Source: Selaginella moellendorffii (lineage: Eukaryota > Plantae > Lycopodiophyta). From it: DNA of 64,000 nucleotides. Numbering within the stretch: position 1 is the stretch's first letter; every line of letters starts with the position of its first letter. Below are positions 15,066-37,127 of the stretch, one piece after another. The DNA lies in the NCBI RefSeq assembly GCF_000143415.4, contig NW_003314264.1, positions 1,931,710 to 1,995,709 on the forward strand. Reading direction: 5' to 3'. The translations under genes and the position numbers were made by a program. Below the pieces are notes generated by a model. The model was not told the DNA's origin and ran no database searches. It saw only the letters and a list, made by a program, of their open reading frames with translations.

Positions 15066-16315
15066 CTATAACTTTTGGCTAACTTCTTCTTGTAGAACAT
15101 GAAGCAGCATTTGGTTCCACATATCGATTGGCCCTGGTAAGCACCAGTGCAGGCAGTCGTGGACTACGAGATCCTCCTGACCTCTGTATCTCCCAGGATG
15201 TCCATCTGGCCTCAAGAACATACTCCTGGTGATGTCGATGATCCTGAACTTGGCGCGGCTTTTTCTGGTAAGCACCTCCCTTGACGCTTCAAGTTGTAAT
15301 CTCCTCATCTCGCTTGGCGTCCAAGTGACTTCACTGCTCTGGTTTGCTGTGGGCTTGGTCTTGTTACAGGTGCCACCCGAGTTCCACTGCCCGTGCTCAT
15401 AGTGCGACATTGCTTCCGTCCGGAGGATCAGCAGGCCACTGAAGCCGGCACTGTGAAGCACATATTCCAACGCGCTTGCAAACGCCATCTTTAGTCCATA
15501 TGTGAACTTCACGTCTGGTAAGCTGCTGTGTGGAAGCTGCTCATTGCGTCCAACTGTGGTGTTCTTGACGTAATAGATGCTTGGCCGGAAGAACCACTGT
15601 CCTGCGGAGATGACCACGATGTCGTACGAGGAAACCTCCGAGGCCCAAACCGCTTCTGGAGTGTCGAGGTGGATCTCAAAGGCCTGGGAGGTTCTCCGGT
15701 GCTGGACGAGCAGCGGCGACCAGAGGATCGCGAGAACGAAGCCGTGAGAGGGGAACTCGAGCTTGATATCCTTACGTCCTCGCGCGTAGAGCTCGCGGGG
15801 CGTCTCTACCTAGAACACTAGAAAGATCGAGAGGTTGTGTAGCAGAAACGAAATTTCTACCTGTGATAGGGAGCACAAGAGCGACTGGTGGTGATTCCGG
15901 GCCAGCGAGTCTCCAAGGAACAGTAGCTTCTTACCTCTCACTAAACTCAAGTAGAGGCTGGGATCGAAATGTGGCAGCTCGCAACTATCCGGTTTCCATC
16001 GCCACTTAAGGTACTCGTTATCTGGTCTTCCATTCTTCTCGCAATTTTGAGCTGGTTGGATGAACTCGCAGGTCCCGTTTGTGTACAGAGGACGTCCTGT
16101 TGGATCTCGTATCCACTTCCCATGGGAGAGATCACACTCTGTTTGTGAGCATTAAATTTTCGCTTTTGTCCATTGCTGTTTGTCTTCTTACCTTCATGTT
16201 TGGTTGTAGGATCCCAAAGTAGGCTCTTGTAGGTGATGAACCACGCTGGACAAATGAAAACGATTAGTCCTGTGAACCTGGAAAGTAGAGTTGGAACCGA
16301 TCTTTTGGCTCTCAT
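15066..16315 (-). CDS. Trichome birefringence-like (TBL) polysaccharide O-acetyltransferase
   Basis: N-terminal TM segment, PMR5N region (NCEKNGRPD..WRWKP..CELP), GDS motif, DCLHWCLPGPID.WN. Start codon uncertain. Confidence 0.93.
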
Positions 16316-18189
16316 TCGCTTGTGTGGAGTTTACGGGGGATTTTGAGAAAAAAGAGAAAAAAGAGAAGACGAAGAATGTGGTCGTTTGGATGTTGGCATC
16401 CGTTTCAGGAGGCAAGTCATTCTCCTTCGTAGTGGGGCTTTCTCTTTCTTTGGAAATTCTCTTTGGAAATTTCTAACCCTGCTGACAATAAAGTGATGCA
16501 TTCAAAAATTATAAATACAATAACACTTTAATTTGCAGCACAATAATTTGGTTTGCTTTGTTTGTGTGAAAGTTCTGTTCTTTGTGGTTTGTAGGTGAAC
16601 CCTAACTGAAGCCGACACAACGGGAACTGCTGATGTGTCAAGTGGAGGGGTGACAGCGATGTGTCCATGAATGTGAGACGATCCCTATTAGACTGCTACA
16701 ATGTTCCTCATTTTACTGACAAAGACAACATAAGTTCTAATTATCCATCTCAGGACTGTAATACTAAACTTACATACTAATCTATGTGGAAAAATTTCCA
16801 GCTTTTAAATTTGTTATTATGTATTTTCAGTTTCAGTTTGGGAAAACAACTGGAACAAACTATTTGATGATTGCATTTAAGGCACAACTCCAAAGCAGCA
16901 CTTCCTATGATCTATATCATTATGCCACTATTAGACTGTAATCCATGCAAATAAATAGTTTACTAACTCACCCAAAATGCCCCATGTCTTCTCATTTTAA
17001 TACACTTAAATTAATCTTTTTAAAGATTATTATAAAATACCTTATAGATGGAGTAATAGAACAACAGTAAAGGCAAGTTTGAAGTTCTTTTTTAGCACTT
17101 AGAACTTGGAAAGTGGTGTTTGAAGGAAGTGGGATGAAGAGAAATTATCATATAATGATATGAAGGGATTAATGCCAAATATGTGAGGGTTCTTGTTAAG
17201 GTAATGGAAGATAGACAAGATGGTTTAAGATTTTAACCCTATATCTTACCTATAGTGAATTATCATATGGTAGCCACAAAGCAAAATTTAACTTTTGGAC
17301 ATGTGTGCTAAGGGCAATAGAATTTAAGGGTCGTGGGCCATTAAACAAAGGGATAGAACCAAATAAGAACATGAAATAAAATTGGAATAGTTTTAGAGCT
17401 TTCAACATCCCAATGCTAAGACTAACACATAAAACAAAGTTAAATAGAATTTAATGCTATTTTAGTATTAGAAAATATATACTCCATTAGCAAATATTTG
17501 AATATTTGAAATAGAAGTGCTTTGTACAACATTGTAACAAGTTGCACTACCTACAGACCTATTGTGTTTCCTCCTAATATTTTTGTAAATCCTAGCTTAT
17601 TAAAATGAGAACCTTAATTGACTTCTATCTTTTCAAGAGGAAGGGATGGTATAAAGTCTATATATGTATGGGTATAATGCTATATACTATTAATTGTGTA
17701 GTTTGATTCTAATAGCTTTTGAATTGGTTTTAATTTGGACCACTCATTTTTGCATATAAGCTAGGGTTTTTAAGCTAATAATATATTTATTTTTCTCACT
17801 TCTATACTTTAAAATAGAATTTTTATATAGATATCTTATGGAAGGTTCTAAGATTGACAGATTTAATAATATAATAGACATAGTTAATATCTACATATGG
17901 GCTATGCCAATATCCACATACAAAAAAATAAATTTTCTTTTCTTTATTATACTAGAATTATCATTGTCATAATATGTGTAAATAGTTATATATAATAAAG
18001 AATAGTAAATAAATTTAGAACTATGTTTATTGTATTATTACATCTATCAATATAAAATTGATCTACAATTAGTACTTAGAAATTCATAAAATGTACTATT
18101 TTAAAGTATATAATAAATTTTCTGCATGTTGCATGCAAGAATGCTTGGTTTGTTTAATAGTAGTGTCATTGAATAATCCAATAGACATA

Positions 18190-18392
18190 GTTAATTTATA
18201 ATTTATAAATCAAGATTAATATTATTGTTTATTAACCACTTGATGGTAGAATAAAAATGAATATACTAAGAAGTGTTTAGGAAAGTTTGTAAATTGTAAA
18301 TATGTTTATAAATTATAAATACAAGATTAATTTAAATGAATAACAACCGTTAGATAGTAGAATATTCTAGAATATCCATGTATATTCTAGGT
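18190..18392 (-). repeat. AT-rich dispersed repeat, copy 1 (inverted relative to the copies near 49.0 and 55.2 kb)
   Basis: Reverse complement contains ctaacggttgttattcatttaaattaatcttgtatttataatttataaa, shared with about 49010 and 55180. Confidence 0.8.
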
Positions 18393-18801
18393 ATATCCTC
18401 TACCAACAGGTATTTCTTAAGCAAACCAAACATTAGTATATAATCATGCTATTATACTAATGAATCATCCTTAATATTTATTTGTCATCTCAACAAATTA
18501 GAATAGCAACATTGCCAAATCATTTTTTCTGATGCATATATAGATATAATTCTAATGTCCATGAGAATGTTGCCTATTATTGGAGGTATTTGTAATGACA
18601 CTAAATGTCAATTGGTGGTGTTGTATGTTTTAAACAATCAATCACATACTCTAGTGAGTATGTAATTGAACATGCCTGCATTATATATTTATACATATGT
18701 GGATTTATTTTTTTACTTTGAGTTGCATATAAAATTATTATACACACAATCACTTTATGATTGCTATATAAGCAATCAAAACATGATTGTATGTATAATC
18801 T

Positions 18802-19430
18802 TTTTGTTATGAGAGCATGGGGCATGACACTTTAGATTGTCATATAAGACTAATGCCACATCATCTCAGACAATATAACATAACCACAAATCTAATGAAG
18901 GTTTTTTATCTCCTTGTATTATTGAGTGCAAATTTGTAATCTTTTGATTGTGATCATCTCTCTCATTTCATTTCACATGGCTATGGCTCATCTCTTATAT
19001 TTTTGAGGTATATTTCAATTGTAACATACCCTAAGTGATTCAATCACTATTGCATATGCCTTGAGTTTAGTCAAAACGAGACTAGTGCAAACTTGTTTAA
19101 ATTAATGACACAAACCACAGAAATATTCTAAGAATATTCTATGGCCTATTGCCTTAAGGGTTGTAGCCTAGGGTTTGCTCCTTGTCATTTCATTGGTATC
19201 GAAATGGTGGCATATACAATATTTTTGTTATGAGATATCCGTGTATGCATGGGACATGACACCTCAAACTGCCACGCAAGACTAATGCCACATAATAATA
19301 TAACAATATAACATAACCATAAATTTAGTGAGGGTTTTTATCTCATTTTTGTGTTATTGAGTGCAAATTTGTGATCTCTTGATTATGATTATCTTTCTCC
19401 TCTCATTTCATGTGGTTATGGCTCATTTCT
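18802..19430. repeat. Two diverged direct repeats of about 190-205 bp (about 18802-18995 and 19223-19430)
   Basis: Shared aagactaatgccacat, acaatataacataacca, ttattgagtgcaaatttgt, tatggctcat. Confidence 0.85.
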
Positions 19431-19632
19431 CACATGTATAACACACTCTAATCATAGCCTTCTTGCAACATAGCACCTTAATCTATATAGTAATTGATTG
19501 ACATAGAGGAAAGCATCTCTTTAGGTGCTTGGGGCATTGAGTGTGATGGTTTTACTACAAGCAAATAGATCTTATTATAACCATGGTAAGGCATTAACTC
19601 TATTGATTTCTCACGTTTATAATCATGTGTTA

Positions 19633-19930
19633 AAGTTTTTGGCATTATAATGATTTATTGCACAAAATGCTTTTCATTACCCTCACTAAAAATGAGATCC
19701 ACATGATAAATATCTGTGAGATAACAAATCTTTACTACAAATTTTTTTGTCTCTAGACCATTGGTTCAATTTATAGGGTTTATAAGAGGGGTTTAACCAA
19801 TTAACAAAGAAAGAGTTTAAAATATATAATGGTGAGTTTTTGGCATTGTAATGATTTGTTGTGCAAAATGCTTTTCATTACCTTCACTAAGAATGAGATC
19901 CACACAATAGATATTTGTAAGATAACAATA
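19633..19930. repeat. Two direct repeats of about 95 bp (about 19633-19728 and 19835-19928)
   Basis: ttttggcatt.taatgattt..caaaatgcttttcattacc.tcactaa.aatgagatccaca occurs twice. Confidence 0.88.
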
Positions 19931-19944
19931 TATATGATCTGGTT

Positions 19945-20050
19945 AAAAATATATATATGATTAAATTGTTGTAACATACATGTGTAACACATAAAATATT
20001 TTATGTATTACACATGTATGTTACAACGATTTAATCATATATATGTTTTT
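19945..20050. repeat. Near-perfect spacerless palindrome of about 105 bp
   Basis: Arms of about 53 nt centred on aaaat|atttt (19997/19998), with about 3 mismatches. Confidence 0.95.
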
Positions 20051-24403: not shown

Positions 24404-25561
24404 TCATTTCCAAAACGCGAGGCGAGAGATCTTCTGCGGCAAGCACATCAGCGGCGACGAGAAATTCGTGCTTGAGTCCATGGAGGGCGAGGAGGAGGAG
24501 GAGGAACCCGCTGCCACCACGGACGAGGAAGACGAAGACGACGAACTCCCCTGTGAATTCCTCCTCCAAAACTTGAGGACGTGCAAGCTCTCCTCCTCGG
24601 TGTGGCGCTGCACCGCGATCCGGGACGCGAATCCCTTGCTCTGCATTATCCGGCAGATCTCTCCCGGATTGTTGGCGGTGAGCGTGACCAGGTAGAAGCA
24701 GCCCCGGCTGGAGATGATCCCGTCCACCACGCCCAAGAGCCGGTCGATCACCACCCTGCCTCGATCACCCCCGGCCCAAGTCCCTGTGATCCCCGGAGCT
24801 CCAACTTCGTCCTCGGGTGTGGGGACGTATGGAGGATTGAAAACCAGCAGGTCTACGCTGCCGGCCAGCCGCCTCTCGAGGCCCGAGACGAGATCGGTGC
24901 GCACGACGTCCGCCGAGACGCCGTGCGCCTTGAGCGTCTCGAGCGTCGTCTCGGTGGCGGCCTGGTTGATATCTGTGGCAACGTATTGGGACGACTCAAC
25001 TTCGTCGCGCAGCATCAAAGCCAGGGAGGAAATCACGTACCCACTGCCACAGCCAATCTCCATGCACAGCTTGGGCTGGAGCTCCGCAAGGTGGGAGCGG
25101 TCGGCGAGGAGGGCGTCCACCAGCGCGAAGGAGTCGTCGCAGGGCTCGTAGACGTCGGCGTGGCGGGCGACGAGGCGGATGTCGGCAGATTTTCTTCGCG
25201 GCGAGAGGACCTGGAGGAACGAGCACGAATCCGATGAGACAAAGCACGTAGAAAACTCGAGCCTGACTCTGAAAGAAAGAGAAGACAATGCAAGACTCTA
25301 GATGCTCGCTCGGGAAAATGCGAAGGAAAGAAATCGTTTGAGAAGGAGAAGGAATGCCAGAGATCCAAAGGGAAAGAGCTCACAAGAAAATGCGAAAAAC
25401 AACCAAACTGGAGGGGAGAGAATTACGTTGTTGGCGCTGTAGGTGTGGCGGAGCTGCTCGCGTAGCGACGGCGCCACACTGTCCATGCTCAGGACGCAAT
25501 CCATGCTCCGCTTGTGAAAGAGCTGCTTGCGCGAGGGCGAAACCTCAGCTGCTGCTGGCAT
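24404..25561 (-). CDS. HemK2/N6AMT1 (Mtq2)-type eRF1 glutamine methyltransferase
   Basis: VYEPCDDSFALVDAL, EIGCGSG, FNPPYVPT, WAGG..GR. Upstream exon 25561-25427 joins 25210 in phase 0; the 5' end is less certain. Confidence 0.88.
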
Positions 25562-25854
25562 CAATCACAGATTCGTCAAACGCACGCGGCAGAGCCAAAA
25601 TCTCACCCATGATTGATTTCTTCACGCGACGCGCCCGGGGAGAAAAGATCCGCAGATCAATCGCTCGCTCGCTCCGCTCGCTCTCGCTAAGACCTAAACG
25701 CAGAGCCCTAAAATCGTAAAACCGGGGATAAGGAGGAATCGTGCTCCTCTTTGCGGCAGGTGTTCGCCTGTGCCGAGGCGATCCGCGATCGTCTTTCAGG
25801 GAAGAAGCTTCCTCGAAAAAGACCTTTTGAAAAGGGCAAAACGAACAAAGGAAT

Positions 25855-28350
25855 CTAGGGCTCCTCAAAACATTTTTTAGGGTTCTTCGCTCGCGCTGCT
25901 CGAAGAAGCTCCAAATTCGCGGGCTCTTCCAGCCACATTCCTCCGGCATCGCTTCTCAGGCACTCCGCCAGCAGCAGCTCACCGCCGTAGGCCATCCCGG
26001 GCAAGAGCAAGCAAGCGACGAGCCCAGATCTCACGGCCTGGTAGACTGCAAATTTGCTGCCGCCGCTCTCGCGCTGGATCATCGCCCACAGGCACTCGAC
26101 GATCGCGCCTGCGAGATCATCCTCGCCCGGATCGTCACGATCCACACCCGCGCGCGCACTGCTCCTCCTCGCGAGCAGCCGCGTGAGCTGCCGGACGCCG
26201 TCGACGAAGACGATCCTCTGGAGCAGCCCTGGCTCAACGGCCAGGTTCTGGATCAACTTCACGAGGTTGTACCGCGCAGCCTCTCCCTGATCTTCGCGCG
26301 ACAGTAGCTCCACCACCCCCTTTAGATTCCGGCTGTGAGGCCCCGCGACTAGCATCCTCCCCCCTCTCGAGCAGCAGGAGATTTGGACGAGACGATTGCT
26401 CGCCCAGGCCGCGTCCTCCATCGCCCCGGCGGTGATAGTTTCCATCAGCTCCTGGATAGCGGCGATAAGATTTCCTCCCTCGTCCTGGCGCTCGAGCGCC
26501 ACCTTCAAATTCTCGCTAGCTTCACTCTCGCTGCGATCGATGAGGCCGAAGCTATAGCATCGCCCAAGCTCCACAATCGCGTTCGTGTAGTCCTTGGCGG
26601 CCGATTCTCGGTAGAGACACATCGCTTGCACGGCATTGGCTTGGATCCCTCCTCCTCCACGCTCGTAGATCATTCCTAGCCGCCACAACGCCTCTGGATC
26701 GCCCAACAACGCCGCCATCCTATACCACGTCCGGGCTTCCAAGAACTTGTGCTCGCTTCCTCTCCAGTCCGCCATGAGATCGCCCATCCCGACCTGGATC
26801 TTGATCTTCGTGGCTTCAGAAAGAGCGCTAGAGTCTTGGATCCATTCCCTAAGTGCTCCGAGTGGAATCGTGCGCTGTTCAACCGCATTGCGCAGTAGCC
26901 AATTCTCTCCCAAGTAGTAGACCAGCGCCTCTAGCTCGTCGGCAGAGAGATCGGCAAGGAAAGATCCGCCAGTGTTCTTGGTGTTCTTGGTAATCCTGCT
27001 TCGCGTCTCGAGGCCCCGGATCATCCCCAGAAAGTCGCAAATCTCCGAGAACTCGGGGCGCATTCGATCCTCTTCATGGCGGCACCTAGAGAGAAATTCA
27101 GCAATGTAGTCTGGAATTCCGCCTAGTCCATCGTCGCCACCCAAGATCTCGTAGCATACTATCGCGAAGTCGCGAATGTCGGCTTCCCTGGAGTACAAAC
27201 TTCCACCGTTCTGATCGAAAACCATCCTCTTTCCCGAGCCTGTTCTTGAGGAAGTTCTTGCGATCCTGGACAGGATCTTCGCGAGCCCGAAATCCGAGAG
27301 CTTGACGATGAAATCTCCAGCGCGAGAGAAGCTCACGAGAGCGTTCCTCGTCTTGAGGTTCGTGTGAATGATCCTGAGATCGTGCAAGCACCTCATCCCC
27401 CGGGCGATCTGGAGCATAATATCCAGCGATTGATCCAGGGAGAAGGGCCCCGGCTGTGAATCCTCACCTCGAGCTCGATCCCTCGCCTTCCCCGCGATCA
27501 CGGCCGAGAGATTTGTGCTCATCAGCTCCATCACCAGCGAGCAGCCCTGGTCTCCCCGCGGCGCGATCCCCAGGACGCGCACCAGATTGGGATGGATTGC
27601 GTGGAAGAGCGGCGCAGCATTGCTTCCCAGATCGACCGGCAGCACCTTCTCCGCGAAGCTCTGCCGCAGCCATCGTGTTTGAAAAACCCTAATGCCCTGA
27701 CTTTGGCCGATGGTTTTCCCGCGCTGGAGCTCCGCGGGATTGATCCTGTATGCTCCGGCCATCTCGCGCGGATCGAGCCGAGCGATGAGCGTTTGCGCCA
27801 TCTGATGGAGCTGCTTGTTCTTCTCTCGATCTATCGTCTTGCACAAGGCCTTGGATTTCTGGAGGACTTCTAGCCGATCGCGCCGCGACAGCTCCTCCAG
27901 CGATGATGCTCGCAGGCTGCCCAGAGTCTCCTCCATGTAACCAAGAAGGACCCCCTCGTCGGGTAGAATGCGAGCGAGCGCCAGGGATTTGCACAGATCT
28001 TCCACCGCGACTTCGAATTCCTGCTGGTTTTCTTCCTTGAGCAGGGCCTTCTCCAGCCAGTGCGCCCTGGATCTGCCGCAGGAGGAGACGAGCTCGAGGC
28101 ACTTGATCACGGCTGCCTTCACGATGGTTTGGAATCCTCCATAGCTCTGTTCTTCCACGAACCCTTCCACGAAACAAGCGAGGAATTTGCACTGCCAAAT
28201 CGTGATCTCCGAATTCTCGGCCGCAGACGCTATCCGCTCTACCAGATCCGCCAGCGGCCGCTGCTGATCGATTGAAAAATCTTGCGAATCCGCGGCATCG
28301 AAGCAGCTGCTACTGCTAGAAGAGATATCTCTCCTGGAATCCAAAGACAT
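25855..28350 (-). CDS. Intronless multidomain protein: N-terminal helical domain, TKL-type pseudokinase, SEL1-like repeats, ARM-like repeats
   Basis: 831-aa ORF. Kinase motifs HPNLV, LVMELM, IMLQIARGMRCLH..IIHTNLK..N, KLSDFGL, RPEFSEI. SEL1-like WYRMAALLGDPEALWRLGMIYERG..LYRESAAKDYTNAIVELGRCYSFG. Helical C-terminal repeats. Confidence 0.85.
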   Translation of the reverse strand: MSLDSRRDISSSSSSCFDAADSQDFSIDQQRPLADLVERIASAAENSEITIWQCKFLACFVEGFVEEQSYGGFQTIVKAAVIKCLELVSSCGRSRAHWLEKALLKEENQQEFEVAVEDLCKSLALARILPDEGVLLGYMEETLGSLRASSLEELSRRDRLEVLQKSKALCKTIDREKNKQLHQMAQTLIARLDPREMAGAYRINPAELQRGKTIGQSQGIRVFQTRWLRQSFAEKVLPVDLGSNAAPLFHAIHPNLVRVLGIAPRGDQGCSLVMELMSTNLSAVIAGKARDRARGEDSQPGPFSLDQSLDIMLQIARGMRCLHDLRIIHTNLKTRNALVSFSRAGDFIVKLSDFGLAKILSRIARTSSRTGSGKRMVFDQNGGSLYSREADIRDFAIVCYEILGGDDGLGGIPDYIAEFLSRCRHEEDRMRPEFSEICDFLGMIRGLETRSRITKNTKNTGGSFLADLSADELEALVYYLGENWLLRNAVEQRTIPLGALREWIQDSSALSEATKIKIQVGMGDLMADWRGSEHKFLEARTWYRMAALLGDPEALWRLGMIYERGGGGIQANAVQAMCLYRESAAKDYTNAIVELGRCYSFGLIDRSESEASENLKVALERQDEGGNLIAAIQELMETITAGAMEDAAWASNRLVQISCCSRGGRMLVAGPHSRNLKGVVELLSREDQGEAARYNLVKLIQNLAVEPGLLQRIVFVDGVRQLTRLLARRSSARAGVDRDDPGEDDLAGAIVECLWAMIQRESGGSKFAVYQAVRSGLVACLLLPGMAYGGELLLAECLRSDAGGMWLEEPANLELLRAARAKNPKKCFEEP

Positions 28351-28450
28351 GGCGGAAAAAACTCCTCACCTTCGAAACTCGCGATAGACCTCAAAGAATC
28401 CCTGTTGAGGCGGCGGACTGTGCCCCTCATCGATCGATCCGGCGCGTGGA

Positions 28451-30064
28451 ATGCCGGCGGTCTTGGATCTTTCCCTGGACGCATCCGAGAGAGAGCTCGC
28501 CGATCGCCTCAGAAGCGCCAAGAACACCGCGCAATGTCAGCTCCTCCATGCCCAGATCCTCGCGAGCCGGCGCCACCGTGACAGCCTCTTCCTCGCGAAT
28601 GCGCTCATCCAGATCTACGGCAGATGTAACGAGGCCGGAGAATCAAAGCGCGTCTTCGATGGAATGGAACGCCATTGCTTCCTCACCTGGAAGCTCCTCC
28701 TCCAGGCATATGCCTTAAAGGGGCATCTGGAAGATGCCAAGCGAACATTCGAAGCCATGCCCGAGAGAGATGCCGTGTGCCACAACATCATGATCACGGC
28801 CTATGGAAGAGCCGGCCAGCTGGAGCGCGCCAAGCGTATGTTTGACACGTCGGTGGAGTGGAGCATCGTGACGTGGAATGCCCTACTGGCAGCATATACC
28901 GAGAACCGGCATTTTGACCAGGCGGTGGAAATATACCGGATTATGCCCGCCGTGAGCATCGTCTCCGCGAACACGATGATGCATGGCTATGCCCTAGAGG
29001 GCCGGATCGAGGACGCTGCCGCGATCTTTGATCGAATGCCGGAGATCAGCATGGTTTCGTGGACGGAGCTCCTCGCACTCCATGCCCAGAGGGGAAATTT
29101 GCGGCGGGCGAGGAAGATCTTTGCACAGGTGCCCGAGTTGAATGTAGTGATGGCCACGGCGATGATCCAGGCGTGCGCGCAAAGCGGGGAATTGCGGCGA
29201 GCAGTGGCGATCTTTGAGAGGATGGGCGAGAGGAATCTTGTGGCGTGGACGGCGATGGTGTGCGCATTCGTCCAGGGCGGGGATTTGGCGTCGGCGAAAG
29301 CGCTGTTCGATTCAATGCCGGAGCACGACACCGCCTCGTGCAATGCGATGCTCCAGGCGCTAGTTTCCCTGGGATTTCTCGAGGAATGCAAGGGAATGTT
29401 TGATTCCATGGTCGATCGAAACGAAATCTCGTGGGCAGTGATGCTCGAGGCGTATGCCCAGACAGGGGATCTCCAGCAGGCGAAGCAACTCTTCGATTCC
29501 ATGCCCGATCAAACGCTAGTGGCACGGACCGCGATAATGGGTCTCTTTGCAGAGAAGGGACACTTGCGCCTGGCAAAGAAGATCTTTGACACGATGTTCT
29601 TGCGGGACACGATCGCTTGGAATGCTATGGTAGCTGCAAATGCCCGGAGCGGGCATGCTACCGCATCGCTGGATCTCTTCCACCGCATGGCCGTGGAGGG
29701 CTATAACCGCGAGGAGCTCGCGTTCGTCAGCGTTCTTGCGTCGTGCGCGCAAATGGGCGCGCTGGAGCGCGCTCGGGGCTACTTTGTGTCGATGGAATTC
29801 GACCACGGTCAAGCGCCTGAGCTGGAGCACTACTCGTGCATTGTGGATGTGCTCGCGAGGCTGGGCTACCTCCGCCAGGCGCGAGAGCTCCTCTCCACCA
29901 TGCCCTTCGTGCCCAACGATTCGAGTTACAAGGCGGTGCTCAGCGCTTGCCGGATCCAACATAACGTCCGCCACGCGTCTGGGATCCTGCGCGAGTGCCA
30001 CACCAACCACTGGGACACGGCGGCGCCGCTCGTCCTCTTCTCCAACGCCGCCAGGAGCGATTAA
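28451..30064 (+). CDS. PLS-class PPR protein with an E domain and no DYW (organellar RNA-editing factor type)
   Basis: Repeated 31-aa motifs (A..LFDSMP....SW..M..AYAQ.G); HYSCIVDVLARLG..MPFVP..AVLSACRI E region. Confidence 0.93.
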   Translation: MPAVLDLSLDASERELADRLRSAKNTAQCQLLHAQILASRRHRDSLFLANALIQIYGRCNEAGESKRVFDGMERHCFLTWKLLLQAYALKGHLEDAKRTFEAMPERDAVCHNIMITAYGRAGQLERAKRMFDTSVEWSIVTWNALLAAYTENRHFDQAVEIYRIMPAVSIVSANTMMHGYALEGRIEDAAAIFDRMPEISMVSWTELLALHAQRGNLRRARKIFAQVPELNVVMATAMIQACAQSGELRRAVAIFERMGERNLVAWTAMVCAFVQGGDLASAKALFDSMPEHDTASCNAMLQALVSLGFLEECKGMFDSMVDRNEISWAVMLEAYAQTGDLQQAKQLFDSMPDQTLVARTAIMGLFAEKGHLRLAKKIFDTMFLRDTIAWNAMVAANARSGHATASLDLFHRMAVEGYNREELAFVSVLASCAQMGALERARGYFVSMEFDHGQAPELEHYSCIVDVLARLGYLRQARELLSTMPFVPNDSSYKAVLSACRIQHNVRHASGILRECHTNHWDTAAPLVLFSNAARSD

Positions 30065-30088
30065 CCGATCCATTGCCAAGCTTCTCCT

Positions 30089-31737
30089 TTACTGCTTGAC
30101 AACGGGAATGGAGGCCATCGCTGCCGCGGCTTTCTCGTCGGAATAGTCGAGATCTTCGATCTCTCCACTCAGAAACTTCTCGTACGAGGCGAGATCAAAG
30201 TGGCCGTGGCCGCACAGTGCCAAGACAATCACTTTGGCCTCGCCACTCTCTCGGCATCGCTCCGCTTCACGGATCGTAGCAGCGATCGCGTGAGTTGGCT
30301 CAGGTGCTGGAATTATTCCTTCGCTTCGAGCAAATTGTAGAGCTCCTGGACATACCAGTCTTTAGCCGGGAATACCAGTAAAAGAGCGATTTTTCTACCT
30401 TGGAAGCATTCTTTCTGCGGTATAGCTATGGCCTCCATGAGCTTAAGATTGTAGAGGTGTGATATCAGCGGTGCCATTCCATGGTACCTCAATCCTCCTG
30501 AGAAACTAGAAAGTTACAAAAGTTGGTAAACGCGAAACTTACCAGCATGGATGGGATCTGGAATAAAGTCGTGCCCGAGCGTATGCATCTTCATCAGGGG
30601 CGTAAACCCGGCAGTGTCACCATAGTCGTAAGCGTACACTCCTCTTGTGAGTGATGGACAAGCCGCCGGCTCGACTGCTCGGATCACCGGATTCATCTTC
30701 CCTGCGAACTTCTCCCGCAGAAACGGGAAAGCCAAGCCTCCAAAGTTCGATCCGCCGCCGGTGCAACCGATGAGTATGTCCACGTCGGTCTCTCCGGCTT
30801 TGGCCAGCTGAAGCAAGCATTCCTCGCCGATCACCGTCTGGTGGAGAAGGACGTGATTGAGGACGCTCCCCAGTGCGTAGTGCGTGTTCGAGTCTTGGAC
30901 AGCAACTTCCACGGCTTCAGAGATGGCAAGGCCCAGGCTTCCCGGACAGTTCGGATCCTCGGCTAGCATTTTGCGGCCCGTGGCTGTAATAGCCGAGGGG
31001 GAGGGGTAAACTTTCGCTCCCCACGTCTCCATCATCGTCTTCCTGTGTGGCTTCTGGTCGTAAGATGCACGAACCTGCCATACCTGCAACAAAACTATAT
31101 AGCTTCTTTCTCACTACGAACTTCAAGTGGTTATACCTCGCAGTCGAGATTGAAGATTGAGCAAGCAAAAGCCAGAGCGCTTCCCCACTGTCCAGCACCA
31201 GTTTCAGTGGTGAGACGCTTGATTCCTTCCTTGGCATTGTAAAACGCCTGTGGGACGGCCGTGTTCGGCTTGTGTGATCCCGCTGGACTCACACCCTCGT
31301 ACTTGTAGTATATCCTTGCAGGAGTTTCTAGCAACCGTTCTAGTCGCTTGGCCCTGGCATGCATAACAGTACAACTAAGCGATGAAGAAAAGGCTTCAAA
31401 AAAACTCAAACCTGAAGAGAGGCGTTGGCCTCCACAGCTTGTACACCGCGAGGACCTCGTCTGGAATGCCAATGTAGCGATCGCTGGACATCTCCTGGCG
31501 AATAAGTTCTTGGGGAAATAAAGCCCCCATGCCCTCTGCTTTCAACGGCTCCAAGCTTCTAGGATCCAGAGGAGGCGGCGGCGGCTGCGGCAAATCTGCG
31601 GTAATGTTGTACCATTTTGCTGGAAGATCCTTCTCATCCAGACTAACCTTTGTGTTGCTGCCACACCTTCTAACCGATAACAGCCTTCTCGTAGCAGGAA
31701 CATCATACAGCCGGAGCCGGAGAACTCTATGGTGCAT
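30089..31737 (-). CDS. Tryptophan synthase beta subunit, type 2 (TrpB2)
   Basis: [61 protein letters not shown]|[16 protein letters not shown]. Alternative ATG at 31761. Confidence 0.95.
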
Positions 31738-32099
31738 CGACGCAGCCGTGAGGTTAAACATCAGAAGGGCGTAAAAAACTGGTAAAAAAGTACCAAGACT
31801 TTCATAAAATGAAAACAAGAGTTTACCTGCACTGTAATCTGAAAGAAATAAGAATATAATATGAGGTAAAATTGCCACTATGGAGATCTTTAAGATTTCA
31901 TTGTCGGCGACCTTCGAGCGTGCCTCCTGTTAAAACTCGTTCTGATTTGCAGCGTGGAGGTGGCCGAGCAAAAAAATTTGAAACGAAGGATTCTTTGGGA
32001 GCTCTTCGGGACGTGCCGACCTTCAAAGAGATAAAATAAGAATTAAGAATCACCATATGATAAAAGAAAAACATCTATATACAAAAAGCCATCCTTGCA

Positions 32100-32893
32100 T
32101 GATCTTCCAAGGGCTTCCATCATCCGTGGTTCTGTGTCACAAACTGTCACTTAAATCGGGAAGCAATCAATATAGCTGTCCAGATCCATGTGTTTATCCA
32201 GGATTGCATGTAGGCGTAGAAGTCTTGGCATTCTCCTTCTAGAGCTGTGTGATGCCGACAAATATGAAGTCCATAATTGCAAGTGCCTTGTGAATTTCCC
32301 CTCCAAAGAGAGGATCTGCCACATTAACGAGTGTGTAGCCGGTCTGTCCGTCCATATGGATAATGATACGTTGGCTAACGTAAGCTCTCAGCAATGCAGT
32401 GGTTATTTCCAGGGGCCTCTTGTCTATGGCCTCGGAAACTGCTGGCACCGTCTTTTCTCCATCAGGGAGGAGAGGATCCCCTGTCCATTTGCCATCTCTT
32501 GGAGATGGGTGGCGGGTCTTGTGCCCATTCTTCATGTTGTCGTGGGGGAGAACGAAAAGGGGTGCGATACCTCCATGTAGTTGGAGAGTAGTTCAAGTGG
32601 TGTGTAAGCGGCTCAGAGAGTGGAGCTGAATAGACTGTTCCTCGGTCGAGAGCCTGTTCGTTAGCAAAAGGTCCACATCTCGTGAGGTGGGGTAAGATGG
32701 TATCTGTTGCAGTCCTACAGGAGGGCGTATGGGATATGAATGAGGGGCTGCAGCTGGCCCAAATGGTTCCTCCTGGGCCTACCTTGTGTCTTGCCAGATT
32801 GCAAATCCTGCTGGTGCTGTGACTAAATGCTGTGGGAGTTGGGGCTGATCTCCGGGCAACAATCCATTCTAGTGCTTGTGTTGATATGGTCAT
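32100..32893 (-). mobile_element. Possible highly degenerate non-LTR retroelement (L1-like ORF2 C-terminal) remnant
   Basis: Coding-like island with broken frames. KWTGDPLLPDGEKTVP loosely resembles the CCHC region of LINE ORF2. Weak evidence. Confidence 0.3.
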
Positions 32894-35695
32894 TAATAGA
32901 ATATGAACTTGCAGGAAAAAAAACTCTAAATTAGATTATGTGAATGAGATTATATATTACTACAAATCATCTATTGAAGAAAAGGTGATTTTATGTGTTT
33001 CAACCTTTGTCTCTAATGACTTTAGTTTCATATTTAACTTGACTAAACCTCAATGAGAAAAGTTTATAAGAGAACATAGTAATAATTCCCATAGAGGTTT
33101 ACTTTTATCTAGCAGCATGGTAACAATTAATAAAGTAATATCAATTCTGCCAACTCAAAATGTAACTTTATTCACAAGCCCAAATATAAGCATATGCAAA
33201 TAATATATTTTCATTTCATGAGCCAAGCAAAAGCTTATACAATATAGTATATGCCAAAACCCATATGCATGCAAAACCATAAAAATATATCATGTATTGA
33301 TTTTACCCTATACCATATGGTGAATTGGATTGTTCCACTAGTTAGTATGGTATAAATGTAGAATAAAACAAGATGAACAATGTCTCCAAGTTAGTCACTA
33401 TACCCAATTTACCTATCATACATTTAAAGCCCAAAATAAACCCTTAGTTTTGGCTTTACCCTAATCCCAAGAGTTAAGCAAAATATAAAATGGTGCTATA
33501 TTGTGAATTTTGTTTCAAGATTGTGTTCAACACTTACATTTCATAAATAACAAATCTAGACACTTTTCATAAATAGCTAATAAGAGTGAAATGCAATTAA
33601 CATACAAGGCATGATAGCAAAGGTTTTAGCAGATATAGTACACTATCATATAGCAATAAGTGTCTAATATACAAGGGTTTTTATTAAGCTTATGCAAAAC
33701 ATAGCAAAAGAGAACTAACAAACACTAAATATATTTAACTAAATAGACATTTAAGAAAAAAAATTTATGTTCATCTAAATGCTAAACATGAATAAAACAA
33801 ATTAATAAAGGGAACTAGCAATATCGATTTATTACAAAAGGAGCAAAAGGGTGAGTATTCTTGCAACTGTCATAGAACAAAAAGAATCTTTTACTTTGTG
33901 TGTTTCAATAGTCGTTTAATGCCTAATACCTCTTCAGATAGTGCCACATCTGCACACGAAAGAGTAAACCATAGATCCCCAAACTCAAGCCCTAGTGGCC
34001 GCTACTTTTTATCTTTGACTATTTAAAAGAATTTATTGATAATTAACTTTTGATACCCACAAACACATCTGTGACAAATAATTGTAGTAAAGGATGAAAC
34101 TTTTAAGGATAACATTGAATATTTTTCAATATTAAGAAAACTAAATAAAAAATAAAGAATGATAAAAGTTATATTTTCAACAGGATGTTTAGAATAAGAT
34201 AAAAGCTTCTCTTTTAAATTAATTATAGAAACTTTAAAATGATTTTATAAGAAAAATACTGATAAACATAGACAAATAATTTTAGTTATTGCTTTACTTG
34301 GTAATTTAGCATTTAATACAAATGAAACAATGATATATTCAACAATTTCATTTTTACCATAAGTCAAAAGAGAGAGAGTAATTTTAGCAAATGAAATTTT
34401 TCATAATATATACAAAAAAAATTAATATCTAATAATATTTGATACAATATATAATTAAAAGATGTGGGGTTTTATTTGAGATGATAACATAAGAGGAAAA
34501 ATTAATACCTATTTGAAATAGTCTAGAAATTTTGGAACCACTTTAATAAGAACCATCTCAACTACCTAGCAAAAGGCACAATTTTTTATGCTCAAGAAGA
34601 AGAGAATTGTCAAAAAAATTAGGCTTTTTCTTTTTAATTTTTTTAATATTTTTTCTAGTTTGCTCTTTTTAATAACAAAAAATCTCTATTTTTTCTAGTT
34701 GAAAGAGAAAGCTAGAATTTGATACACCCTTCAAATTTATAGCTTGAGCACCATGACATTTGCATAATGGCTAAAAAGGTTATTAAGAGTCTTATCAAGT
34801 AATTTGTAATTTGTACTCTGAACAATCCACTTTCACACCCAACTTACTAGTTATTCATTCTAGTGTCATTAACATAATGAGCCATTGAGCAAGAACAATA
34901 CCATGATAATTAAATTTTAGTTTGGTGAGTCTACTTATGAGCCTGGATGAAGTTTTGACACCTTTATAACACCAAACTCTATGATACACACTAAAAATAA
35001 CGAGGAAAACCTTTTACCACAGTATTTTACTTAAAATCTTATGGCATTCAGTTGGCTATTGCTCTTAACAATCTCAAAAATCAAGTTTTATTTATACAGG
35101 TTAGTAAAATAAATCACAACCATTAAAAATTGAAACCTTGGACATTGAAAAAAAAAGAGAATATACCAACTAAAATGGATTTAAAATTCAAGTTGCAAGT
35201 ATCACTTGCAAATAAATTTCCATAGTTATGAGCTTGCTCACTCCCCAAGAATCCTCACTTCCTTAAATCAAACTTAAATTCCCAATTATTAATCCCATGA
35301 TAATCACAGTCATCCTTTTTACCCAAACCTTATTGAAACAAGCTGCCCAGAATGAAGAAAACTCTTTAGAACAAACATAGTCTAATTAAAAATCTTATTG
35401 TTGATTCTGTGTTGCTTACTCTTTAACAATGCTCCTTTCAAGTTGCCATAAGAATGCTACTCCATCTTTGAAACATGGGGCAAACAGCTAGATTAGATTA
35501 TCAAACCTAGTTACTTTTCTTAAGAGTTATTCGCATGTATCTTTGTCTTGAGTAAAAGCCAAAGACAAAGATCATAGAACTCATAGAACTCATTCCCTTG
35601 ATCGTCATGGAACTCATTTTGATTTTTGTGCGAACTCTAAGTTTCATATGCCAAGCATACTTCCATTCCTTAAAGGGAATTTGACAGTTCACAGA

Positions 35696-37127
35696 TCAAC
35701 TTATTTCAAGAGTTTGTGCACTAATCTCAACGGAGTGGAAGTCCCCTGCCACTGGGTCTTGGTGCCAGTTGTTTGTGTCATCTGTTTAAAAAAACAAAAC
35801 CGTTTAAAACTGGTCGCAAATTGAAGTGTCACCTTCAATCTTCTGTAGAGACCGATACTGAAGTCGTACGCTTTCATTGTTATCGAGAGTTTTCACCAGA
35901 TACCTGCAAGGCACAGACACCTCTATTCAGATGCCTAAGCAAAAGAGACACTAACCATCCATTTAAGCACTGTGTCGTAATAATCGCTTGCTTGCCAACA
36001 AACCTCTCTGGGGTTCTCTTATTTCCCTGAAAAACACGGAGTAATATACTACGGAAAACAAAACAAGTACCAAACCTTGATCAAGACTTTGTCACTAACA
36101 ACATAAGGAAACTGGACGCCCTTCGGACGTCCGGCATCCACGGATTGATCGCCATCCTGTAGAAGAAGCGTCAAATGCCAGCTACAAACTCCATAAAAAA
36201 GCCTTACAGGATCTTTACCGGATCTCTTCTCCGCTTCGCTGCTGTTCCTTTGGGCACGACCCCAGACTTCGGAAAACCTCTGTCATGCCTGAAAGCCAGC
36301 ACAGCCGCTCGCAATGCTGCACACAAAAATACCTTGAAAGAAAATCACGAGAGAGTTGTTTTGCATCTTATACCCAAGTTTATGGATCCATCTGCAATAC
36401 GAGTAGGCACTTGGCAAATCTGGCACAAGCTCTGCGGAGGAAAAGAACTGACTCAAGCCTGAAAATAGATAAGCTTACTCACAGTTTCTTGTATCTTTTG
36501 AATACCCCCGGATCCAAACGTGTGACCGCAGGGAAATATAACGGCATCGTCCATTAGCTCGCCCCTGGAGGATCACTAGAAGGTAAGACACCAAGAAAGA
36601 AAAATCAAACACCATAAAACTTACGAGAATGGATCCGAAAGTATTTGCTTGAGCGATTGCTCGGCGGTTTGCAGGATCTCGTTCTGGTGGTGTCCTCGAA
36701 TGCAGCTCCCACCGGTGAGCAGCGACGTGTAGTAATTGTTTAGAGCGTCACCTCCATCTTTGGTGGAGGCACCATTGTTGCTGATCCCAGCCGCATTGGC
36801 GGCCGGCGTGGACTGGCTAACACTAGCGCTACCGTGAGAGAAAGAATTCAAAAAGAGGAAAGAATTGGCACTGGCAGCGGCAGCCGCCCCCGGCGTGCCC
36901 GATATTTCTTTCGATCTCTCCATTTTCTGCGAGCTAATGGCGGCTAACCTTGCCTGGAGCTGGGGCATGCGCCGGTGATTGCTGCTACCGGTGGCGGCGG
37001 ATTCGTAAGCTGCGGCGGCCGCGGCAACGGCGGCGCCACGCCTGGGGTGCTGATCGACCAGCTCCTCCTCCTCCTCCTCGTAATCATCGGATCCATCAGA
37101 CGCCCCGCCGCTCTCGCCTACGCTCAT
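35696..37127 (-). CDS. U-box protein, PUB62/PUB63-like, multi-exon
   Basis: ILSDPFS|GELMDDAVIFPCGHTFGSGG, LRAAVLAFR, KGVQFPY.VSDKVLIK|GNKRTPERFVGK.A.ITTQCLNGW|YLVKTLDNNESVRLQYRSL. Confidence 0.92.

Follow-up and report, generated by a model that had tools for sequence, protein, structure and literature searches.

How does an intronless reading frame of 831 codons come to stand in the genome of the lycophyte Selaginella moellendorffii outside its public annotation, and what kind of protein might it encode? The frame occupies positions 25855..28350, on the minus strand, of a stretch of 64,000 nucleotides of contig NW_003314264.1 (assembly GCF_000143415.4, forward-strand positions 1,931,710 to 1,995,709), the whole of which is called the window here. 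We think it probable that this open reading frame (ORF) is a real, unannotated gene and that its product belongs, as a strongly diverged member, to the plant MLKL and MLKL_NTD-kinase family, with a helical bundle, a brace, a dead kinase domain, three repeats of the Sel1 type and a helical tail.

The ORF is a single intact frame that begins with an ATG and runs through 831 codons to a stop. An earlier note on this DNA, made without database searches, had described it as intronless, and had its coordinates and length right. No splice joints were seen within it in RNA reads, the coverage of which is thin. The region has a G+C content of about 59%, and, with stop codons expected from base composition at about 3.3% per random codon, an open run of 831 codons would arise by chance with a probability of about 5e-13; the frame is therefore not accidental. 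The locus corresponds to GL377568.1:1957564-1960059 in assembly GCA_000143415.2, where 7.6 kb of GL377568.1 are identical to window positions 25451-33064. No gene call covers the ORF in that assembly, the recorded calls jumping from a methyltransferase gene to a PPR gene. The exact 831-aa protein is absent from a collection of 15 billion protein sequences, and a word-index search with the full protein, made among proteins of 457-1454 aa, returned three weak kinase matches only and nothing near-identical. With no gene call at the locus, no such entry in the collection and no near-identical protein in that size range, the 831-aa gene is unannotated, or annotated as a short fragment at most. The window holds no paralogue detectable by tblastn.

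The central part of the protein (aa 200-447; 27010..27753) belongs to the kinase fold, as indicated by a Pfam match to PK_Tyr_Ser-Thr at aa 245-404 (E 1.2e-19). Compared with all PDB sequences, it matches AtMLKL2 (6LBA, E 2.4e-14) and AtMLKL3 (6KA4, E 1.8e-13), both cryo-electron microscopy structures by their record titles, behind one tandem EGFR construct, and it has the blocks WL..SFA, C.LVMELM and DIMLQIARGM..LH in common with the two Arabidopsis proteins. In an alignment with 11 relatives, the Gly loop is degenerate (215-GQSQG-219), the beta3 Lys is retained as K235, and the position of the alphaC Glu is occupied by N244, with a Pro three residues on. The catalytic loop reads H329-T330-N331-L-K333-T-R-N336, so that HRD is replaced by HTN and the catalytic Asp is lost, K333 and N336 being retained. 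DFG is present at 353-355. The short activation segment (aa 362-371, RTSSRTGSG) has many Ser and Thr residues and no APE, and a stretch of some 26 residues, which makes up the alphaG region of relatives, is deleted. Every motif that the earlier note had listed for this domain (HTN, a degenerate Gly loop, no alphaC Glu, no APE, Lys and DFG kept) was verified in this alignment. Because HTN stands in place of HRD, N244 in place of the alphaC Glu and GQSQG in place of a regular Gly loop, and because APE is missing, aa 200-447 are predicted to form a catalytically dead pseudokinase.

An exhaustive search with aa 1-450 of this protein (the query) retrieved 18,268 proteins with E-values of 0.001 or below. 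The strongest matches were those of mosses (Ceratodon, Sphagnum), Selaginella and Klebsormidium, together with a canonical MLKL of Pinus. Relatives that share both the N-terminal domain and the kinase are 30-41% identical to the query (E down to 7e-52), examples being KAH9557224 and KAH9558938 of Sphagnum, KAG0608811 of Ceratodon and XP_024542112 of Selaginella, and about 200 residues precede the kinase in 84 of the 150 best matches. MLKLs had been presented in the earlier note as proteins of animals and seed plants; this limit does not hold, since mosses, Selaginella and Klebsormidium have many relatives with N-domain and kinase.

The first 32 residues (28255..28350) are a Ser-rich extension without predicted structure, in which AlphaFold2 (AF2) places no helix (pLDDT, the predicted value of the local distance difference test, 52-64). 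Beyond them, the AF2 model of aa 1-200, built on the alignment of relatives (overall pLDDT 83.9; predicted template modelling score 0.75), has helices at 33-45, 51-67, 74-90, 98-104, 109-128, 136-172 and 179-192, in agreement with the helical N-terminus proposed at about residues 30-195 in the earlier note. Helices 33-45, 51-67, 74-90 and 109-128 make up a four-helix bundle, HeLo or MLKL_N-like (aa 33-128; 27967..28254), after which the long helices 136-172 and 179-192 would form the brace (aa 129-199; 27754..27966). The model was compared by VIA-align, independently of Foldseek, with 48,161 representative PDB chains. The human MLKL N-terminal domain ranked first (6ux8; Z 11.3, 126 residues aligned, root-mean-square deviation 3.6), mouse MLKL second (4btf; Z 10.2) and AtMLKL3 fourth (6ka4; Z 9.2), the last over 167 residues (model 28-200 against chain 2-225) that take in both bundle and brace. 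In Foldseek, ranks 1, 2 and 4 among 350,542 chains were held by AtMLKL2, human MLKL and AtMLKL3. A fold search of the ESM Atlas gave template modelling scores of 0.43 or less; its first row, plant proteins with DUF7792 and Arm, is a lead and not evidence.

Profile comparisons point in the same direction. A profile of the N-termini of the 84 relatives, from which the query had been left out, matched query aa 80-196 in hmmsearch (17.4 bits, E 1.8e-7 as a single test) and aa 33-196 in hhalign (probability 90%, E 1.5e-6). The profile alone succeeded: phmmer with aa 1-200 against 153 hits found nothing at default filters and weak collinear matches with the filters off. In the N-termini of 85 relatives (the 84 plus that of a metagenome protein, P0181, discussed below), Pfam recognizes MLKL_N in 16, DUF1221 in 13 (best 1.5e-57), RPW8 in 3 and DUF7792 in 1; DUF1221 is the HeLo domain of the AtMLKLs (PMC10951266). 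The family motif N..QC..L is present in the query as W52-Q53-C54..L57 and the motif C....W...A as C91..W98-L99..A102, and the brace Asp, nearly invariant across the family, is D158. Since fold search, sequence profile and adjoining kinase domain all name the same family, the identity of aa 33-192 as an MLKL-type bundle and brace is established at the level of prediction; these lines of evidence overlap only through the AF2 model, which was built on the relatives' alignment. The fold check by AF2 and Foldseek that the earlier note had proposed for this region thus comes out in favor of its MLKL-like core of four-helix bundle or HeLo domain, brace and pseudokinase.

Several observations weigh against this assignment. 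Pfam finds no match in aa 1-200 of the query itself, and so no direct one to DUF1221; the Foldseek E-values of the N-domain all exceed 0.7; and Z values of 9-11 lie under about 13, the level at which helical bundles are safe from matches due to common arrangement, with unrelated helical proteins close behind in the VIA-align list (3ay5 at Z 9.3, a designed cage at Z 8.7). From these search figures one might argue that the likeness to MLKL is just a common arrangement of bundled helices, and that what stands here is a fusion of pseudokinase and Sel1 repeats, unrelated to MLKL, in which the N-terminal region is coiled. We consider this very improbable. MLKLs from human, mouse and Arabidopsis supply three of the top four structures among all the chains compared, and the match to AtMLKL3 extends over bundle and brace; profile homology links the query to N-termini that carry MLKL_N or DUF1221 and that occupy the same position before a homologous kinase; and the kinase domain is itself nearest to AtMLKL2 and AtMLKL3. 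A further adverse point is the net charge of the bundle, which is -5. The bundle of animal MLKL has a basic lipid-binding face.

The C-terminal half begins with a helical linker (aa 448-517; 26800..27009), defined by alignment and AF2 and collinear with the linker of the moss-type relative P0181. Then come three Sel1-like repeats (aa 518-625; 26476..26799) and a tail predicted to be helical (aa 626-831; 25858..26475). The earlier note had read SEL1 and ARM-like repeats in this half, and the first part of that claim stood. Pfam reports one Sel1 repeat (PF08238) at 24.9 bits, under the gathering score of 30.7; PDB proteins with multiple Sel1 repeats match aa 519-644 with E-values of 5e-17 to 2e-16; and the alignment shows three repeats, at aa 518-551, 552-588 and 589-625. 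AF2, run on the last 386 aa with a 9-row alignment, gives a model that has a pLDDT of 53 and is confident at about aa 535-615 only. Judging from the sequence matches, we take the three repeats to be real. The ARM part was not confirmed. Residues 638-831 are modelled as helical at pLDDT below 50 and have no Pfam or PDB sequence match, and a word-index search with aa 640-831, again restricted to proteins of 457-1454 aa, gave no match at E 10 or below. The similarity of the tail to ARM families in protein-language-model features is 0.93-0.94, with fewer than 170 shared features. Because these features are the sole support for it, given the low pLDDT and the lack of relatives in Pfam, PDB or the database searched, the ARM-like label stays a lead. 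A saposin match (Pfam, E 0.25) was set aside as chance.

Among the relatives, P0181 is the only one found to have the order brace, kinase, linker and Sel1. This 992-aa protein from a JGI metagenome, the kinase of which is sister to that of Sphagnum magellanicum KAH9564270, is collinear with query aa 106-648 at 26% identity (E 4e-42). It differs from the query in having an intact HRD (MHRDLKARN) and a hydrophobic C-terminal third, where the query has a soluble helical tail; around aa 750-800 of P0181 (L003:92-3070), long hydrophobic stretches have the look of membrane helices. Other relatives end differently. P0098, also a JGI metagenome protein (698 aa), has an N-terminus of about 230 residues without a Pfam match, followed by a kinase with HRD and, at the C-terminus, a jacalin lectin domain. 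In the moss proteins P0004 (Ceratodon purpureus KAG0608811, 1479 aa) and P0005, the unit of N-domain and kinase is present two to three times per chain, with HRD intact. The Sphagnum proteins P0162, P0169 and P0157 (960-993 aa) continue for about 450 residues past the kinase, without a Pfam domain and unlike the query tail. A DUF1221 N-domain is present in P0162 and P0157, the catalytic loop of P0169 reads HGN, and shorter members (519-552 aa) of the 90% clusters of these three stop about where the long tails start. Since Sel1, jacalin, repeated-unit and unrelated endings of about 450 aa all occur among the relatives, the C-terminus of the N-domain and kinase family is, as judged from these sequences, variable. 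The variation in C-terminal domains for which the earlier note had suggested looking (jacalin, a second kinase unit, hydrophobic ends, the Sphagnum tails) is thus found.

To the points that count against the proposed family membership must be added the kinase tree, in which the branch of the query measures 3.07 against a family median of 1.1. Its neighbors in the tree are P0018 of Selaginella and a group of non-HRD proteins, with a support of 89 in the Shimodaira-Hasegawa-like approximate likelihood ratio test. Neither a grouping with P0181 (p 0.35) nor one with the Pinus MLKL (p 0.31) is rejected by approximately unbiased (AU) tests, and the tree, which allows both groupings, cannot place the query. 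A common origin of the Sel1 fusion in the query and P0181 would be compatible with the AU test, which does not reject it. No kinase-Sel1 gene lies beside the gene for P0018.

Transcription of the locus belongs on the same side of the balance. In three stranded RNA runs (X16, X17 and X18), of which about 12% each was read, sense depth over the ORF is 0-2, close to background, compared with 20-36 for the methyltransferase gene and 1-3 for the PPR gene. No raw RNA reads fall on 27740-28327 (aa 8-203), and the reads of X16 over 25976-27298 are antisense to the ORF, that is, they represent plus-strand RNA; those of X17 and X18 are sense. Contigs from a further run, X2, the RNA nature of which is guessed only, cover four stretches of the ORF at depth 2-11 and may come from another haplotype, another accession or a close paralogue. 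One sequence difference from the raw reads of X18, and others from the X2 contigs, allow constraint to be compared between regions. Within aa 417-663, 9 differences are synonymous and 3 non-synonymous, and an in-frame insertion of 3 bases (CCT) lies in the C-terminal part; within aa 50-291, 1 is synonymous and 8 are non-synonymous. On this contrast, which involves small numbers (Fisher p 0.0075), the data suggest that the linker and Sel1 part is under purifying selection, and that bundle and brace are changing fast in amino acids. The excess of amino-acid changes in bundle and brace could also come from decay and not from diversifying selection.

Indeed, one could envision that the gene as a whole is a decaying or functionless paralogue of an MLKL_NTD-kinase-Sel1 family, in which the frame is still open for lack of time. 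This would account for a kinase that is dead and lacks its alphaG stretch, for the length of the end branch and for the near-silent transcription, and the antisense reads in X16, the missing gene model, the failure to find any relative of the tail and the fact that 8 of 9 differences in aa 50-291 alter an amino acid all fit it. The 831 stop-free codons at 59% G+C argue the other way, as do the 9 to 3 ratio in aa 417-663, the insertion that preserves the frame, the retention of the family motifs and of D158, and the confidently predicted fold of the N-domain. It is also common for immune genes to stay silent until they are induced. Furthermore, a pseudokinase is the normal working state of MLKLs (bioRxiv 10.1101/681015). 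All in all, we regard decay as unlikely, with a chance that is modest but should be kept in mind.

If the gene is instead a functional, diverged MLKL, as we favor, the closest parallel is offered by the plant MLKLs AtMLKL1-3 (Mahdi et al., bioRxiv 10.1101/681015; PDB 6KA4, 6LBA), which have the same order of HeLo or four-helix bundle, multi-helix brace and pseudokinase. The catalytic loop is non-HRD in both, HGD or HGE in the AtMLKLs and HTN in the query. Differences lie in the deleted alphaG stretch, in the lack of a direct DUF1221 match and in the C-terminus, a serine-rich region in the AtMLKLs and, in the query, the linker and the three Sel1 repeats, followed by the helical tail of 200 aa; moreover, the family was described for seed plants, whereas the query comes from a lycophyte. 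The N-domain, brace and kinase layout is shared with the MLKL_NTD-kinase fusions, among them the wheat/Aegilops resistance gene Pm13 (PMC10951266) and the proteins from mosses, lycophytes and charophytes, the chains of which end at the kinase or continue in one of the ways set out above. Most of these keep HRD and all catalytic residues and are presumably active, unlike the query, in which the catalytic Asp and the alphaC Glu are missing; some have degenerate loops (HGN, HGE, HLD), as the query does. Animal MLKL (6UX8, 4BTF), with the same four-helix bundle, brace and pseudokinase, provides the best structural matches to the N-domain; however, its bundle has no detectable sequence similarity to that of the query, which is acidic and is accompanied by the Sel1 and helical tail. 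We know of no RIPK3 or RHIM partner in plants.

How might such a protein work? Plant MLKLs are auto-repressed tetramers with an extended serine-rich C-terminus that contains no known domains; in AtMLKL, the HeLo and brace region causes cell death, the full-length tetramer buries both elements, and a phosphomimetic variant of the pseudokinase differs in activity (bioRxiv 10.1101/681015). If the query behaves like AtMLKL and animal MLKL, the likeliest scheme is one in which the bundle would be kept inactive by pseudokinase and brace. The solenoid made of Sel1 repeats and tail might bind a protein partner, for instance a kinase acting upstream, a guardee of the host or a molecule of a pathogen, or might add to the autoinhibition. 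The trigger could be phosphorylation or binding, either at the Ser/Thr-rich activation segment or at the tail, upon which the released bundle would oligomerise and act on membranes or on other targets in immunity. It is from the known MLKLs that we infer autoinhibition, a sensing role of the tail and an output in cell death or immunity.

Two further proposals bear on this scheme. In the first, the protein would be a non-lethal scaffold or adaptor, in which the pseudokinase and the Sel1/helical solenoid assemble a signalling complex and the bundle serves oligomerisation or localisation without damage to membranes; the complex might include active kinase-Sel1 proteins encoded in this genome, or might form at the cytoskeleton, as has been reported for AtMLKLs. 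Kinase-Sel1 proteins are common, Sel1 repeats bind proteins generically and the bundle is acidic, all of which would suit a scaffold. None of the present results contradicts it directly. On the other side, bundle and brace are cytotoxic in every MLKL tested (bioRxiv 10.1101/681015), and we rate the scaffold as a rather improbable outcome. In the second, a single chain would be sensor, switch and executioner: the Sel1/helical tail would itself recognise a protein derived from a pathogen or from danger, the signal would be relayed through pseudokinase and brace, and the freed bundle would kill or signal. This more ambitious version of the MLKL scheme is a long shot. [quoted passage not shown] The earlier note had likened the layout to that of an NLR. 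The two are alike in abstract layout alone (helical-bundle effector, central regulator, C-terminal repeats), for the query has no leucine-rich repeats, and a Pfam scan of the 831-aa protein found no NB-ARC or other STAND NTPase domain; the analogy is functional speculation and should not be read as homology.

As for its surroundings, the ORF is flanked by two expressed genes, for a methyltransferase on the same strand and for a PPR protein on the other. The methyltransferase gene (24404-25830, minus strand; MTS/HemK-like) is strongly expressed, and its spliced 5' exons extend to about 25745-25828. Its introns, of 68, 216, 55 and 52 nt, are very short, and 25607 is joined to either of two donor sites that lie 3 bases apart (25551 or 25554). 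Because two bases are found at about 50% each in RNA at sites 25112, 25433 and 25537, two alleles or haplotypes of this gene appear to be expressed. Between the start codon of the ORF and that of the divergent PPR gene (28451-30064) lie only 100 bases (28351-28450). X2 contig depth is 30-fold or more apart between the two genes (2-11 for the ORF, 141-160 for the PPR gene), and the 28351-28450 interval would therefore need to be a very asymmetric bidirectional promoter. Elsewhere in the window, two blocks of 28-38% G+C (16001-20000 and 32001-36000) stand amid gene-rich DNA of 50-60% G+C and are probably repeats or intergenic DNA.

MLKL-type proteins of non-seed plants have already been counted in surveys based on NLRtracker (PMC11218826). 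A text search of the literature for Sel1 together with MLKL in plants turned up nothing relevant, and the statement in the earlier note that no plant family with this exact layout has been described holds as far as the literature was searched. What is new is therefore a domain arrangement within a known plant immune family, in which a Sel1 tail replaces the serine-rich end, and the public annotation of S. moellendorffii misses, at this locus, a single-exon gene of 2.5 kb. To our knowledge, the signal that activates plant MLKLs has not been found, nor has any upstream kinase or ligand. Since a Sel1 solenoid is protein-binding, the tail offers a handle on MLKL regulation and could be used as bait for regulators of an MLKL-type executioner. 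Finally, with relatives that carry jacalin, tandem-kinase or membrane-type C-termini and a query that carries a Sel1 tail, these findings suggest that the MLKL core of non-seed plants is a module that has been joined repeatedly to different recognition parts.

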